A stretch of DNA of 64,000 nucleotides, from the NCBI GenBank assembly GCA_002269645.1, contig NIVC01001121.1:124001-188000 (forward strand), written 5' to 3'. This document shows, piece after piece, positions 4,001 through 28,000 of the stretch. The stretch comes from Macrostomum lignano (taxonomy: Eukaryota). A model generated the notes under the pieces. It had not been told where the DNA came from and searched no databases. It saw only the letters and a program-made list of their open reading frames with translations. A program made the translations under genes and the position numbers. Position 1 is the first letter of the stretch. Every line of letters starts with the position of its first letter.

Positions 4001-7000
4001 GATTCCATAATCCGAAGAGTAGTTGGAATAGTTAGAGGTTGCTACAAACATTCTGAGCATGGTGTTGGAGTAGGCGTTCAGGTAGGATGGCAGAGTGTGG
4101 TAGCCTCGGTTGTCGAACCAGATCACGGATGAGTTCGACTGCAGTTCAAGACCGCCCCAGCGTTGGTTGGCTGCAGGAGCAATACTGACGGACCGAGGGC
4201 CGCTGAGGTTGAACCGTGCTGTCGAACGCAGCAGCAAATCATTCAGATTTGTTGTTTCTCTCAGCTCGTGAATGACGTCACCGCTAGGCGTGACCAAAAC
4301 GTCTGGCGGGGTACCCTTCGAATATTCGTCCACGCACTCGTAGTGCGAAGATTTGTCGCACGAGCAGTTTCTGTATGTGGCGTACTTAGCGAGTTTGGCA
4401 GCTGTGAAGTTCTTCAAATCCCAAGTGGCTGACGTTTCTTTGCAGGGGGCAGTGAAGAAAGGAGTCTTGCCTCGGTTTTCGCCGGGCATGCAGACTGTAC
4501 CAATTCCTGGCGGCCGAGCAAGCGACGACCGCACCGCCTCTTTCATGGGGAAGCCTGCATCCTGGTACAGGAATGTGACGGCCCCCGGACCGTAAATGGT
4601 CGGCGTCAGCAGCAATTTTGCGCTCTCCTGGCTAAATGACGGTCTCAACAAAGTAGATCCCATGGTGAACACGATAAACACGCAGGGCAGGATCAGCATG
4701 CCGATGTAGCTGATCCAGCTTCTCTTGGCGTGGTGGAACCTCTTGCCAAATAGGGCTCCGATTTTGACACCGGTGCTGGGCTTGCCCGCTCGCTTCTGGT
4801 ATTGGATGCTCTGCGGCGAGTCCTGAATCACCTCCTTGCCGAAGATGATGTCATTGAAATAATCGGATATTGTCGAGCAGGTAATTGAGAACCATGTGAC
4901 AAATTGCTTGGCAGTCTTCAAGCGGTCCAGACTGTAGGTCAGGCTAGCCATGACGCGGCCCTCTTTCGGGCAGGTCAGCTGGACTTTTTTGTGTCGTTCG
5001 TTGATTGCTGGCTCGGATGTATTCAGATTCTGAGCACTCAGTTCCTCAGCCAGTGCCTGGGGCGACTCTGAGCTGATGTCGATCGTGTAGCGACAGTTTT
5101 CGAACAGGTTCTGGTAGCTCTGGCTGTCAACGATGCAGCCGTCTTTCATCACGGCAACGTGATCGCCGAGTATTTCCGCCTCCTGCATGTCGTGGGTGCA
5201 GATCAGCGTGGTGCACCGGTGCGCTTTGATCAGCTCCCATATGGTGCGTCGCGCATCCGGGTCTACTGATGCCGTTGGCTCGTCAAGTATAACCAGGCTA
5301 GGCTTGCCAAGGAACGCAAGGCCGATTGACAAACGCCGTTTCTGACCGCCGCTCAGCTTTTGGACGGCTACGTTGCGGACTTTGTAGAGTCGAAGCCAGC
5401 GCAGCATGTCTTCAAGCTCGGACTTGGAGCAGCCCTTGAGAGCGCCAAAGTAGGCCAGGTTTTGCTTCACAGAAAGGCTGTATGGAATTAAGAGAGAGTC
5501 AGTTTCTTAGCTTCCTAGCAATCGTAGGTTCGTCTAATACCAGATGCGGGGTTAATAAGGTTTTATTGATGAACTTACTCGTCATAGTAGACGTTGTGCT
5601 GCGGACAGAACCCGATACTTGATCGAAGCTTGTAGAAGCTTGTCGAGACGTTCAATCCGTTGACGGTAATCTTACCGGAGTCGCACGAGATCAGACCGGT
5701 TATCATGTTTCTAAAGAAAAAGCATCAAGACACAAAAATAAAGTACGAGCTATTTTGAGACTGCTCTAATACAAAAAATATTAATTCAAATCTTACATAG
5801 TCGTTGACTTTCCAGCACCGTTAGGGCCTAATAGAATGGTTGTCTCGTTTTCTTGAAGCTTCAAATTAAGATTTTGCACAGCCTGCTTCGATCCAAACTT
5901 TTTGTTGACGTTTTTCAGTTCAACAACAGCGCCAGCAGCACTGGAGGTGTCACTCTTCTTGCGCGAGCTGTCGCAACCCCAGTAACGAGCGGTGAGGAAG
6001 AACAGCGGAGACTGAGGTACGCCGTGCTTGCCCGGAAGTACGTTTCTGAAGTACCAACCGACCAGGAAATAGACGACACCGTCCAATGCCAGCGCTAGGA
6101 AGCTTCCGTATACTTGGATGCCGTATGTTTCCTTCATAATGTCCGACCAATGGACTTTAGAGTTTGCCAGCTGTAGAGTAACTATTGAACGAGAAGCCAA
6201 GGAAAACGCCGTCGGAGAGAAAATATTAACCGCCTGGAGAGCAGTACCGCCAATGTGCAAGTAGGATAGAAATACGAACGGCACAAACATGAGCAGGTAG
6301 ATGAGCAGGGCGATAACGCAAGCGACGCTAGAGGTGATGAAAAACGCGGATACCATGTAGCCGAAGCCGAGCGAGCTAAACGAGAACAGACCAAACAGGA
6401 CAAAGATGATGCTGGGGTCGGTGCCAGAGAGCAGGCCGCCATATACACAGGCTATTGTGATGATGACACTCAGGATCAACATATTCAGCAGCTGCACCAG
6501 GAACCACTGCAGGAAGTGTATGCTCGGTCTAAGGCCCATCAAGAACAATGGTATCTCGAGACTGTGCTCTCTGTCATACATGATTTGCTGTATGGCTATG
6601 GCGAGCGGTGCGAGCCACATGAAGATGGTGGATATGGGCAGTATAGCCAGACCGAAGGATCGCAGCATGCTGTCTTTCTGAAGGCAGGGAGTGGGCATCT
6701 GCTTAGTCTGCTGTGCTGGCATGTCGCGCCCAGTCTGCATCCGAACAATCGTCCGATCGATGGACTCCTGAATCTGAACGAAGCCGCGTTGATAAGCCAA
6801 ATCGAACATAAAGCTGGAGCGTTTTTCGTAAATCTCTGGATAGCTCATCAAAGTGTTTGTTTGATAGAGTGTTCCGTAGGACATGCGAATTGTGTACTTG
6901 ACGTGCGCAGGCAGGCCGGAGCTCCCTGGGGCTACGTCTCGACGGCGTCTCGACGAGGATAGATTTTCAAAATCGATCACAGCGAGCAGGCGGTTTTCCG

Positions 7001-25000: not shown

Positions 25001-28000
25001 GTTTGGTTATTAAATCTGCCTCTCCACCCCCTCTCAGTCCTTGAGAATCTGCCTCTCCGCCCCCTCTCAGTCCTTGAGAATCTGCCTCTCCGCCCCCTCT
25101 CAGTCCTTGAGAATCTGCCTCTCCACCCCCTCTCAGTCCTTGAGAATCTGCCTCTCCACCCCCTCTCAGTCCTTGAGAATCTGCCTCTCCGCTCCCCTCT
25201 CAGTCCTTGAGAATCTGCCTCTCCGCCTCCCTCTCAGTCCTTGAGAATCTGCCTCTCCGCCTCCCTCTCAGTCCTTGAGAATCTGCCTCTCCGCCTCCCT
25301 CTCAGTCCTTGAGAATCTGCCTCTCCGCCTCCCTCTCAGTCCTTGAGAATCTGCCTCTCCGCCTCCCTCTCAGTCCTTGAGAATCTGCCTCTCCGCCTCC
25401 CTCTCAGTCCTTGAGAATCTGCCTCTCCGCCTCCCTCTCAGTCCTTAAGAATCTGCCTCTCCGCTCCATCCCAGAGCGCAAATTTCTTACCTCATTCAGA
25501 AACTGCGTCAGATTCAACGCCGTCATGGCAGTCGAATTCGAGCAGGCAAACTGCTGCACCTGAATCAGCAGACGGTGATTCGCGGCTGGCGGATTGAACA
25601 GATTTTTTAGTTCCATTGCGCCGCTGCAGAACTGGCCCACCACAGCTGCGGAAAGAGTCTGGTCCATCTGGAGCAGCTGCAGCAGCTGCAGACAAAAATT
25701 GGGAAAGTTTTGTAAGTTTGAGCTTATTCTCATCAAGACGCTAAGAAACTTAACTAAACTGACAGACAGACAGACAGACAGACAGACAGACACTAAGACA
25801 GACAGACAGACAGACAGACACTAAGACAGACAGACAGACAGACAGACACTAAGACAGACAGACACTAAGACAGACACTAAGACAGACAGACAGACAGACA
25901 GACAGACACTAAGACAGACAGACAGACAGACAGACACTAAGACAGACACTAAGACAGACAGACAGACAGACAGACAGACACTAAGACAGACAGACAGACA
26001 GACAGACACTAAGACAGACAGACACTAAGACAGACAGACAGACAGACAGACAGACAGACAGACAGACAGACAGACAGACAGACAGACAGACAGACAGACA
26101 GACAGACAGACAGACAGACAGACAGACAGACAGACAGACAGACAGACAGACAGACAGACAGACAGACAGACAGACAGACAGACAGACAGACAGACAGACA
26201 GACAGACAGACAGACAGACAGACAGACAGACAGACAGACGGACAGACAGACAGACATGCAGACAGACAGAACTCTCACCCCTCCGAGGGTCACAGGCGTG
26301 GCCTGCAGATCGGACATGGAGACACCCCGACTCAGCAGTTGTTTGACAATTTCCGGAGGCAGCATCTTGTCCAGAGTTGAGTTGAGCACTAAAATTGATT
26401 TAGAGGTCTTAATTAATATCTAGAAGAGATATTTTGTCTGACAGGTCAATGGAAAAGTTCTCACTCAAAGACTGCAGCTGCACCAGGGTGCCAAGAATCC
26501 GCTGCCCGCTGCCCATGAACTTCAGGGCCATGTCGAACTGCGCCTTGCTAGCTGGATCGTTGCTAACCAGAGCGGAAATCAGCTGCACCACCTGCTCAGC
26601 TGTCTGCGTCAGGTAGGCAGCGTTGGACAGCAACCCAGGTGCGCTGAGCAGCTTCTGGAGCTGCTGAACCAGCGCCACGGCCCAGTTGCTCACGGCAACC
26701 CTGTCGAGACCTCGCAGGATTTCGAACTGGGGCAGCAGGCGCAGCAGAGTCTGCAGGTCGCCAATGGCCAGGTTGACATTGTAGTTGTAGGTGAACTCGG
26801 CTACCTGCTTGAACAGGCCGAGCGCTTTGCCGATGTTAAACTGGCTAAACAGAAAGTCGCTGAAGTTGCTGGCTCTGAACGAGTTCACCGAGCACAGCGC
26901 GTTCGAGATCTGGGCAGCTACAGTCGAGTTCTTGTCACCCTCGTAGTTGATGGAGATGTACTGCACCAGGAGGCTGGGATCGCAAGCAATATCCGTGATG
27001 CTCTTTCCGCCGAATGCCGAAATTAGCGACGTCAAGTTCAAACGGCCCTTCATCAGGGCGGTGGCCGCTTCAGGCGTGAGGAGCCGAGTTTCTTCGCTTA
27101 GGAATTCGATCACGAGAGTCTCATTGTAGAACAGACTGCCGATGGTCATGCTGAGCGAGTCTGCGGGATTTGTGCAGAGTTGGTTCAGCCCGTTCTTGTC
27201 TGTCCCCATCAATCTGTTGACTCTTGTCGATCCGTGCGTATCGGTCGCCCAACTCATCAATTATTAAAAAAAGCATTTTTTGAGGAGGGGTTTGTTCAAA
27301 TCAACTCATCAGGCTAAGAAGACTATAAAATTGCAATGCGCAACAGAAAACAAGTGGAAACACAATTGGAATTCAGCAATCCATGGCTGCTCTTCCTCTC
27401 TCTCCCCTCTTCCCTTCTTCCCCTTTCCTCCCCCAACTCACCCAGCAAGCTGGACAGATTATTCGCCGCTGCCGAATTTCCCAGCTTTATGATGGCTTTG
27501 GTGACTTCTGGCAGCTTCTTCAAGCTGGCCATCTTGGTGTCGTTAATCAGTATCGGCGTTAGCGCCTTGTCGAGCCGTTTGAACCGGCCGCGAGCGATGG
27601 CCTCGTTCGGCGTCTCCGTGTAATTGGGCGGCAGGCACTGGTTGTCCAGGTTGCAGCCGAAGGACTGCATGAAGCTCAGCGTGCCTTCCGACGGCATGTT
27701 GACACCTCGGTACTGGCCTGTCGATGGTGAGTAGTGGGGCAACCTCCTTTTAGTTTGTTCGGCCCTAAAAGGCCCAAATTTTATCGAAAGCATTGAGGCT
27801 TTTTTTCACTTACACGGAGCCAGAGACTCAGGCGGCGACACATGCCGCACAACCACCACCGACGAGATGATGGCCACGGGCAGTAGAACTTGCGTCACTG
27901 ACAGGGCCTGGGAATTTTTGGATTTTTTTATAAAATAAGGTTTAACAAACAAAACAGTATTTTAAAGCAGACTCACCGCGACGCTGAGGCCTTGAATAAT

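Follow-up and report, generated by a model that had tools for sequence, protein, structure and literature searches.

The minus strand of a 64,000-nucleotide stretch of the genome of the flatworm Macrostomum lignano (positions 124,001 to 188,000 of contig NIVC01001121.1; hereafter the window) very probably encodes a full ABC transporter of the ABCA12/13 type, about 5,490 amino acids (aa) long, with the architecture TM1-ECD1-TMD1-NBD1-TM7-ECD2-TMD2-NBD2 (TM, transmembrane segment; ECD, extracellular domain; TMD, transmembrane domain; NBD, nucleotide-binding domain). Its first extracellular domain accounts for ~3,965 aa (residues 44 to ~4007) and reads as 17 tandem copies of the small 'lid' element that is present once in transporters such as ABCA1 and ABCA4. 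The gene is already in GenBank as fragments, and giant ABCA12/13-type transporters are widespread in animal databases. All positions given below are those of the window, where position x corresponds to coordinate x+124,000 of the NIVC01001121.1 record; window 1-18364 is 100% identical to this contig of the Mlig_3_7 assembly.

The core of the transporter is delineated by the Pfam domains ABC2_membrane_3 and ABC_tran, which were each found twice in the minus-strand open reading frames (ORFs) 7712-5796, 5506-3944 and 3856-2222. These three ORFs match the structures of ABCA1, ABCA4 and ABCA7 over TMD1-NBD1 and TMD2-NBD2 with E-values of 1e-55 to 1e-117, and the collinear matches include ABCA3. Both NBDs retain intact motifs, as could be read directly and as an initial annotation of this DNA, made from the letters alone, had stated: the Walker A, signature and Walker B motifs are GPNGAGKST, LSGGQKRRL and ILDEPT in NBD1, and GPNGSGKST, LSGGQRRKL and LLDEPS in NBD2. 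These features show that the predicted protein possesses the core of a canonical ABCA lipid transporter, in which the motifs for ATP binding are intact. The part of NBD2 between Walker A and the Q-loop (window 2700-2860) is presumably ~20 residues shorter than in the usual ABCA NBDs; despite this apparent shortening Pfam aligns the whole domain.

To define the exon structure we used a protein-guided spliced aligner written for the analysis, with a 5,492-aa composite of the GenBank models PAA54280.1 and PAA72003.1 as the guide. In this protein-to-genome alignment the composite is collinear with the window from the ATG at 28042 to 1071, followed by the stop codon at 1070-1068; 5,454 of its 5,492 residues are matched, in 43 exon pieces joined by 42 GT-AG introns, and the intact structure of the paralogous type has 40 exons. 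An ab initio Viterbi gene model (45 exons, 5,077 aa), which missed or mis-joined several exons, was discarded in favor of this alignment. Exon 1 (27977-28042, 66 bp) encodes Met1 and an N-terminal cytoplasmic stub, and is identical to the start of PAA72004.1 and PAA54280.1. It is followed by exon 2 (27814-27907, 94 bp), which carries TM1 (residues 24-43, at 27904-27847; hydropathy peak 2.28), of the length and position of TM1 in ABCA1, along with the start of ECD1, and by exon 3 (27442-27717), which encodes the conserved N-terminal 'base' motif of ECD1 and aligns to ABCA1 residues 47-133 in exact register, albeit with a weak E-value of 0.57. Taken together, exons 1-3 match the N-terminus of ABCA1 (TM1 and base motif) position for position and with equal lengths.

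The coding span of ECD1 (6657-27846) is distributed over 34 exons, i.e. exons 2-35 of the 40-exon gene, one of which is 1,855 bp long. The exon at 5797-7663 (1,867 bp; window piece 38, exon 35 of the paralog) encodes, by Pfam, the C-terminal third of ECD1, TM2-TM6 (TMD1, with TM2 starting at ~6656) and the Walker A motif of NBD1 at ~5828. ORF 7712-5796, which contains it, matches ABCA1 residues 351-943 (E 6e-55), and the two ends of ECD1 align to ABCA1 47-133 (N-terminal) and 351-640 (C-terminal). Two further exons within 3945-5710 (5710-5579 and 5477-3945) encode the rest of NBD1 (signature at 5356, Walker B at 5290), the linker/regulatory region, TM7 (~4717) and ECD2, as judged from Pfam and hydropathy. 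TM8-TM12 (TMD2) and NBD2 share one exon at 2243-3767, in which Pfam ABC2_membrane_3 and ABC_tran were both detected, with Walker A at 2863, the signature at 2611 and Walker B at 2545; this exon matches ABCA1 1654-2169 with an E-value of 2e-117. The last two exons (2131-1997 and 1340-1071, spanning 1071-2131) encode the C-terminal region and a Ser-rich tail, and are identical to the C-terminus of PAA72003.1. ABCA proteins carry a C-terminal motif of the VFVNFA type; its place, across the last intron, is occupied by 'QTTLEQVFLELC' ('QTTLEQ|VFLELC'), where only the VF is kept.

Beyond TM1, the composite has TM2 at residue ~4011, TM7 at 4593 and TM8 at ~4851, and by hydropathy no further TM-like segment was found within ECD1 (residues 44 to ~4007), nor between TM7 and TM8. 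The minus strand at 7.7-27.7 kb contains 29 stop-free stretches of at least 100 aa, compared to a mean of 7.5 and a maximum of 16 in shuffled sequence; stretches of at least 200 aa number six on this strand and none on the plus strand. No Pfam match was obtained in these upstream open stretches, and an Rfam scan of the window returned no match. The overall dimensions agree well with the initial annotation, whose hand estimates of ~3,900 aa (3,500-4,000) for ECD1 and ~5,500 aa in total compare with ~3,965 and 5,492 aa in the composite; its count of more than 30 ECD1 exons is borne out by the 34 at the intact paralogous locus, and TM1 and TM2 lie where it had placed them, at ~27.85 and ~6.65 kb.

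Evidence that these parts belong to one gene comes from M. lignano proteins that were the top matches when the contiguous ORF 7712-5796 served as query in an exhaustive HMMER search, and whose sequences agree with that of the window. The partial model PAA54280.1 (3,734 aa) extends from Met1 through the entire ECD1 into the TMD1 exon, and aligns to its own locus on the paralogous contig NIVC01002939.1 with 0 mismatches, 0 frameshifts and 34 GT-AG introns between 35 exons. The Mlig_3_7 annotation was built from RNA sequencing (RNA-seq) data with StringTie, TACO, TBONE and TransDecoder (PMC5730564). Given this perfect alignment and the RNA-seq-derived annotation, the model provides transcript-derived evidence for a single mRNA at the paralogous locus in which TM1 and every ECD1 exon are joined to the TMD1 exon. 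Overlapping models tile the rest of the gene, namely PAA59651.1 (2,165 aa, ECD1 only), UniProt A0A1I8GZ96 and PAA72003.1 (1,951 aa, partial, from the end of ECD1 to the C-terminus); a further partial model, PAA72004.1 (1,352 aa), runs from Met1 into ECD1. As for A0A1I8GZ96, a protein of 5,452 aa named 'ABCA2' from the older ML2 assembly, it starts in the middle of ECD1, and past the ABCA C-terminus it continues for ~2,100 unrelated low-complexity residues. A read-through has made this model chimeric, and the agreement of its length with that of the true protein is coincidental. A literature search on the gene identifier Mlig007002 found no paper.

The existence of ECD1-only models (PAA59651.1 and PAA72004.1) and core-only models (PAA72003.1 and PAA56532.1) in GenBank, together with the trans-splicing that often cuts M. 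lignano transcripts (PMC5730564), might be taken to mean that the 8-27 kb exons form a separate gene for a secreted or membrane-anchored protein, located upstream of a normal-sized ABCA. However, a normal ABCA needs TM1 and the N-terminal base of ECD1, both of which are located upstream of the array in the window, at 28.0-27.4 kb. Moreover, PAA54280.1 connects Met1 and TM1 via all ECD1 exons to the TMD1 exon, PAA59651.1 and PAA72003.1 overlap over the ECD1-TMD1 boundary within the 1,867-bp exon, the split models stop at frameshifts, a deletion or contig ends, and array and core occur in a single chain in orthologs from four other phyla. A separate gene is thus largely refuted and, in our estimate, hardly credible; the 8-27 kb exons belong, as the initial annotation had it, to the same gene as the ABCA core.

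A tandem array of lid modules

The regularity of ECD1 lies in its cysteines, which recur as pairs of the pattern C-x(21-41)-C in 17 modules of ~215 aa each, with successive pairs spaced 160-245 aa apart; an alignment of the copies has two invariant cysteines ~30 residues from each other. The first cysteine of each module is encoded on the minus strand at 26984, 25628, 23352, 22532, 21595, 19825, 18538, 17943, 16525, 15410, 14492, 13321, 12307, 11644, 10972, 9616 and 8316. Residues 1-4010 contain 51 cysteines and as many as 92 N-glycosylation sequons, corresponding to ~5 sequons per module. In addition to the 17 modules, ECD1 comprises the conserved base and tunnel parts. Module 1, the canonical form (residues 146-377, with Cys205 and Cys235), is encoded by exon 4 (26465-27160), and its residues 151-360 were used as the seed of a jackhmmer repeat profile that was searched against 151 real sequences and reversed decoys. 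This profile recovered 125 domains at an independent E-value below 1e-3 in the real sequences and 0 in the decoys. Nine copies are significant in the M. lignano protein and nine to 18 in the best-scoring giant relatives, and ABCA1-type proteins have exactly one copy, near residue 150-300.

In human ABCA4 the profile matches residues 153-269 with an E-value of 3e-15, and in ABCA1 residues 143-290 with an E-value of 5e-4. Cryo-electron microscopy has identified ABCA4 residues 138-271 as the 'lid', a flexible and hollow element that forms the distal tip of this protein's extracellular domain (PMC7932691, PMC8501128). At the level of sequence, these matches show that the ECD1 module is homologous to the single lid element of ABCA1 and ABCA4. 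An AlphaFold2 model of module 1, computed from a 16-sequence alignment, is all-alpha, with a predicted local distance difference test score of 78.8 that rises to ~90 in the N-terminal 110 residues, where the Cys pair is located.

The repeats are strongly diverged. A blastp search of ECD1 against itself gave the self match only, and exon-by-exon blastp gave weak hints of repeats; jackhmmer with the middle of ECD1 produced long, roughly collinear matches in giant proteins from molluscs, arthropods and a crinoid, in which single regions match repeatedly within one protein. Given that the modules are only 15-25% identical to one another and that the introns are out of register with them, the amplification must be old. 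A literature search on ABCA13 in invertebrates returned nothing relevant, and the organization of a giant ECD1 as an array of lid modules appears to be previously undescribed.

Affinities with ABCA12, ABCA13 and the invertebrate giants

Regarding its provenance, the initial annotation had offered two alternatives, an ancient ABCA12/13-type lineage or an independent expansion, and had proposed a phylogeny of the NBDs and TMDs. We constructed a neighbor-joining (NJ) tree from 1,696 core columns of 25 taxa with 200 bootstraps, in which vertebrate ABCA2, ABCA4 and ABCA7 were sampled in part. The resultant tree unites the giants and ABCA12/13 in a monophyletic group with 100% bootstrap, apart from an ABCA1-type clade that also has 100%; M. 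lignano falls with the protostome giants at 98%. After Macrostomum itself, the best matches to the TMD1 region are 29-34% identical, and in most of them the match lies 2,000-5,200 residues from the N-terminus, implying that most of these relatives also possess a giant ECD1. Among invertebrates they come from the molluscs Patella, Sinanodonta, Plakobranchus and Biomphalaria, the crinoid Antedon (3,932 aa), Dermacentor ticks (~4,130 aa), Vespula wasps (4,000-4,500 aa, one of them named ABCA13) and a millipede (Chamberlinius). The vertebrate relatives are ABCA12 of gar (5,270 aa), axolotl (5,222 aa), Pelobates (6,762 aa) and lungfish (7,012 aa), and ABCA13 of naked mole-rat (4,998 aa) and wombat (4,904 aa). 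In the RefSeq/GenBank proteins of Antedon, Dermacentor and Vespula the array and the core are present in one chain.

Because the core groups with ABCA12/13 and the invertebrate giants at 100% bootstrap, we favor an ancient ABCA12/13-type lineage over a private expansion. If the giant ECD1 were instead specific to flatworms and convergent with that of ABCA13 and ABCA12, this would be in line with two observations: no similarity between the M. lignano insert and the vertebrate ABCA12/13 inserts, which have internal repeats of their own, was detected by jackhmmer in both directions or with the lid hidden Markov model (HMM) in a set of 150 proteins, where divergence beyond detection is possible, and periodic Cys pairs are not evident in ABCA12/13. 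Such convergence is nevertheless highly unlikely in view of the collinear insert homology and the same lid array in mollusc, arthropod and crinoid proteins, the fully supported core clade that includes ABCA12/13, and the low mutual identity of the M. lignano modules and the introns out of register with them, which point to an old amplification. Hence, of the two alternatives originally offered, the ancient lineage is upheld and the independent expansion is not.

ABCA13, with ~5,000 aa in human and other mammals, is the largest ABC transporter. It shares with the M. lignano protein the full ABCA architecture, the core clade and an ECD1 in which more than 3,000 aa separate the conserved N- and C-terminal parts. 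It differs in that its insert has no detectable similarity and no evident 215-aa Cys-pair periodicity, and in that much of its ECD1 lies in one big exon, in contrast to the 34 exons of M. lignano. A 2026 review, in a passage citing Prades 2002, places much of the ABCA13 ECD1 in a 4.8-kb exon (PMC13161189); the same review terms the ECD 'abnormally large' and its structure 'largely unexplored'. The initial annotation had used ABCA13, as the only human ABCA of this size, for a yardstick; it is not the only one available, as non-mammalian ABCA12 proteins (gar, axolotl, frogs, lungfish) reach 5,200-7,000 aa. ABCA12 is the glucosylceramide transporter of lamellar granules and has 2,595 aa in human. 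Vertebrate ABCA12 falls in the same clade, is ~29-31% identical to the M. lignano protein in the TMD1 region and, in non-mammals, likewise displays a giant ECD1 with internal repeats of variable copy number; however, the sequences of its repeat units are unlike the flatworm modules. Frog and lungfish ABCA12 carry two to three copies of a ~1,200-aa block that is single-copy in gar, which accounts for their size of 6,200-7,000 aa; this block is a separate and recent repeat expansion.

The closest relatives outside Macrostomum are the invertebrate giants (3,000-4,500 aa, and one metagenomic protein of 6,516 aa), which are named 'ABCA1-like', 'ABCA13' or 'uncharacterized' in the databases. They have a collinear ECD1 with Cys pairs ~215 aa apart, and differ in the number of modules, with 8-12 copies in most and ~21 in the 6,516-aa protein, as against 17 in M. 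lignano. ABCA1, ABCA4 and ABCA7 belong to the other clade and have an ECD1 of ~600 aa with one lid module, which in ABCA1 and ABCA4 is the segment that matches the repeated module of M. lignano; their core is 30-35% identical, and conservation extends to the N-terminal base motif of ECD1 and to the C-terminal third of this domain.

The copy in the window and its surroundings

We compared the window at the base level with the paralogous loci on NIVC01002939.1 and NIVC01002244.1, which are 95-99% identical to it, introns included. This revealed interruptions in the reading frame of ECD1 that the initial annotation had overlooked, although the two duplicated blocks it had recognized, a ~595-bp unit at 24.15-25.35 kb and a ~756-bp unit at 16.66-18.17 kb, are both real in the sequence. 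The former is a tandem duplication (24153-25345), 100% identical over 300 bp, which gives two copies of the 176-bp exon 7 (24977-24802 and 24382-24207) and is missing from both paralogous loci. Further downstream in the gene, a breakpoint at 19059-19073 marks the absence of ~870 bp of the paralogs, including the 227-bp exon 16 (residues 1349-1423); skipping of this exon shifts the frame, and when residues 1350-1423 are forced onto the window the resulting alignment is meaningless. The equivalent of the 1,855-bp exon 17, which encodes three modules, occupies 16278-18884 and is inflated by the 756-bp tandem duplication (~18171-17412 and 17415-16660) and riddled with small insertions and deletions (indels). 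The two copies differ from each other by 1 substitution and 14 gap openings, and neither paralog has the duplication. A recent gain of a module was considered for this block and rejected, given that its length (252 codons) and boundaries are off the module register and that the copies differ almost only by indels.

Between 8458 and 18185 there are small indels that break the frame relative to the intact paralogs. They were located by the comparison with NIVC01002939.1, and the same positions appear as frameshifts in the protein alignment: 1-bp deletions at 18185, 18037, 16434, 14413, 14145, 13591+13590, 12511, 12225, 12017, 11060, 9378 and 8458, and 2-bp insertions at 17907 and 17568. Altogether, exons 17-33 (window pieces 18-36) contain ~15 frame-breaking indels of 1-2 bp. 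As assembled, the window copy has no end-to-end translation, and for this reason the GenBank record of NIVC01001121.1 bears only two partial 'hypothetical protein' models, with ~11 kb between them (~19.6-8.4 kb) left unannotated.

Mlig_3_7 is a PacBio/Canu assembly polished with Pilon, in which 180 Mb of non-repetitive blocks are duplicated at at least 95% identity (PMC5730564). The small indels in the window are most likely residual PacBio consensus errors in such a duplicated region of the genome. At 22057-22061 a 1-bp insertion and a 1-bp deletion relative to the paralog lie 4 bp apart and compensate each other, changing 1-2 residues; this pair supports the interpretation of the small indels here as assembly noise. 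The contrasting interpretation is that the window copy is a decaying homeolog in a hidden-polyploid genome, with real frameshifts, a real loss of exon 16 and real duplications, and that only the other copies make protein. The number of defects, including the two tandem duplications found in neither paralog, and the restriction of the GenBank annotation to two partial models are consistent with such a pseudogene, as is the redundancy of the DV1 line, whose supernumerary chromosome copies and duplicated sequence (180 Mb; PMC5730564) would permit decay. However, over 9.4 kb the window and the paralog differ by 31 gap openings and 27 substitutions, a ratio of ~1:1 that is far above that of neutral decay, and the copies of the 756-bp duplication are even more skewed towards gaps. 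The small indels in the single-copy exons at 14.4-8.4 kb are nearly all 1-bp deletions, as is typical of PacBio consensus, and NIVC01002939.1 has 1-bp deletions of its own near its contig end, where the window is intact. Furthermore, the reading frame is fully open throughout the core (7.6-1.0 kb), which is identical to PAA72003.1, and the ratio of nonsynonymous to synonymous substitution rates (dN/dS) between the window and NIVC01002939.1 is 0.18 over 3,280 ECD1 codons, indicating purifying selection. A pseudogene is therefore unlikely, and consensus errors remain our preferred explanation, with less assurance for the three structural differences than for the small indels. The initial annotation's remark that the protein looks like an active transporter accordingly needs qualification: judged from sequence it would hold for the copies on NIVC01002939.1 and NIVC01002244.1, but not for the window copy as assembled, with its broken ECD1 frame.

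Several points weigh against our overall reading of the gene. No database model or read by itself covers the whole distance between Met1 and the stop codon, and the 5,492-aa protein was put together from two paralogous loci, 95-99% identical to each other. The frame of the window copy is broken, exon 16 is missing and two segments are duplicated, and this copy could be a real pseudogene. By HMM only 9-12 modules out of 17 are significant, the remaining ones being assigned from the Cys-pair periodicity. A Foldseek search with the model of module 1 found no match in the PDB at E<1, where the ABCA4 lid is unmodelled or poorly resolved, so that the lid assignment derives from the sequence profile. 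To these must be added the lack of detectable similarity to the vertebrate inserts, and the nature of the core tree, an NJ tree with limited sampling and one outgroup. Lastly, the substrate and the location proposed below are extrapolated from other ABCAs, and the conduit role is speculative.

Many introns of the gene are filled with micro- and minisatellites, such as (GACA)n at 25.76-26.27 kb, 33/34-bp units at 24.4-25.5 kb, ATTATG repeats at 21.03-21.21 kb and 20/40-bp units at 20.38-20.64 kb. A 22-bp minisatellite at 10536-10742, in the intron between exons 11095-10791 and 10393-10266, recurs just upstream of the gene as a 0.5-kb array at 28837-29502, and a 20-bp array is located further upstream at 30187-30597. 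At 32150-32803 lies a long low-complexity tandem repeat with several frames open on both strands (GAPAPGVPEPGAP... / GASTRGAGTRG...), which is probably a satellite rather than a gene. The G+C content falls sharply to 0.29-0.34 at 36000-40000 and 46000-48000, against ~0.5 in the gene. An Exo_endo_phos (AP-endonuclease) domain spread over two overlapping frames at 42730-44264 (plus strand) looks like the frameshifted remnant of a retrotransposon of the LINE (long interspersed nuclear element) type. ORFs with MACPF domains at 54534-55385 (minus strand, E 3e-21) and 61140-61997 (plus strand, E 5e-22) represent paralogous perforin-like genes a few kb apart on opposite strands.

Possible function and implications

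By analogy with ABCA1, ABCA4, ABCA7 and ABCA12, the M. lignano protein would be an ATP-driven lipid exporter or floppase that moves lipid into the cavity of its extracellular domain. Its extracellular or granule-luminal part would be lengthened by a disulfide-stapled and heavily glycosylated chain of hollow helical lid modules. More speculatively, this chain may serve as a conduit or scaffold that holds or hands on lipid, in the form of either a prolonged cavity or a long glycosylated stalk, and the lipid may be delivered or retained at the surface or inside secretory granules, much as ABCA12 loads lamellar granules. On this comparison, its site of action is probably the secretory granule or the surface of the epidermis. 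We also tentatively consider a broader scenario, possible but short of probable, in which ABCA12/13-type transporters as a whole were originally built, in ancestral bilaterians, on the plan of the 17-module array: hollow, disulfide-stapled lids arranged in series would extend the lipid tunnel tens of nanometres from the membrane, and the ECD1s of human ABCA13 and non-mammalian ABCA12 would be degenerate arrays.

For M. lignano, the pair of 'hypothetical protein' fragments annotated on NIVC01001121.1 and several more from other contigs become pieces of one transporter of 5.5 thousand aa, and the unannotated 11 kb between the two is coding sequence that was damaged by assembly errors or by real decay. 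The organism is amenable to transgenesis and RNAi. ABCA13 and ABCA12 are disease-linked lipid transporters, and we know of no structure or role for their oversized first extracellular domain. In the flatworm gene and its invertebrate relatives the giant ECD1 is readable as a simple repeat of the ABCA lid, which provides a concrete model for these giant domains. If the array is indeed ancestral, the well-preserved invertebrate arrays would be a key to modelling ABCA13.

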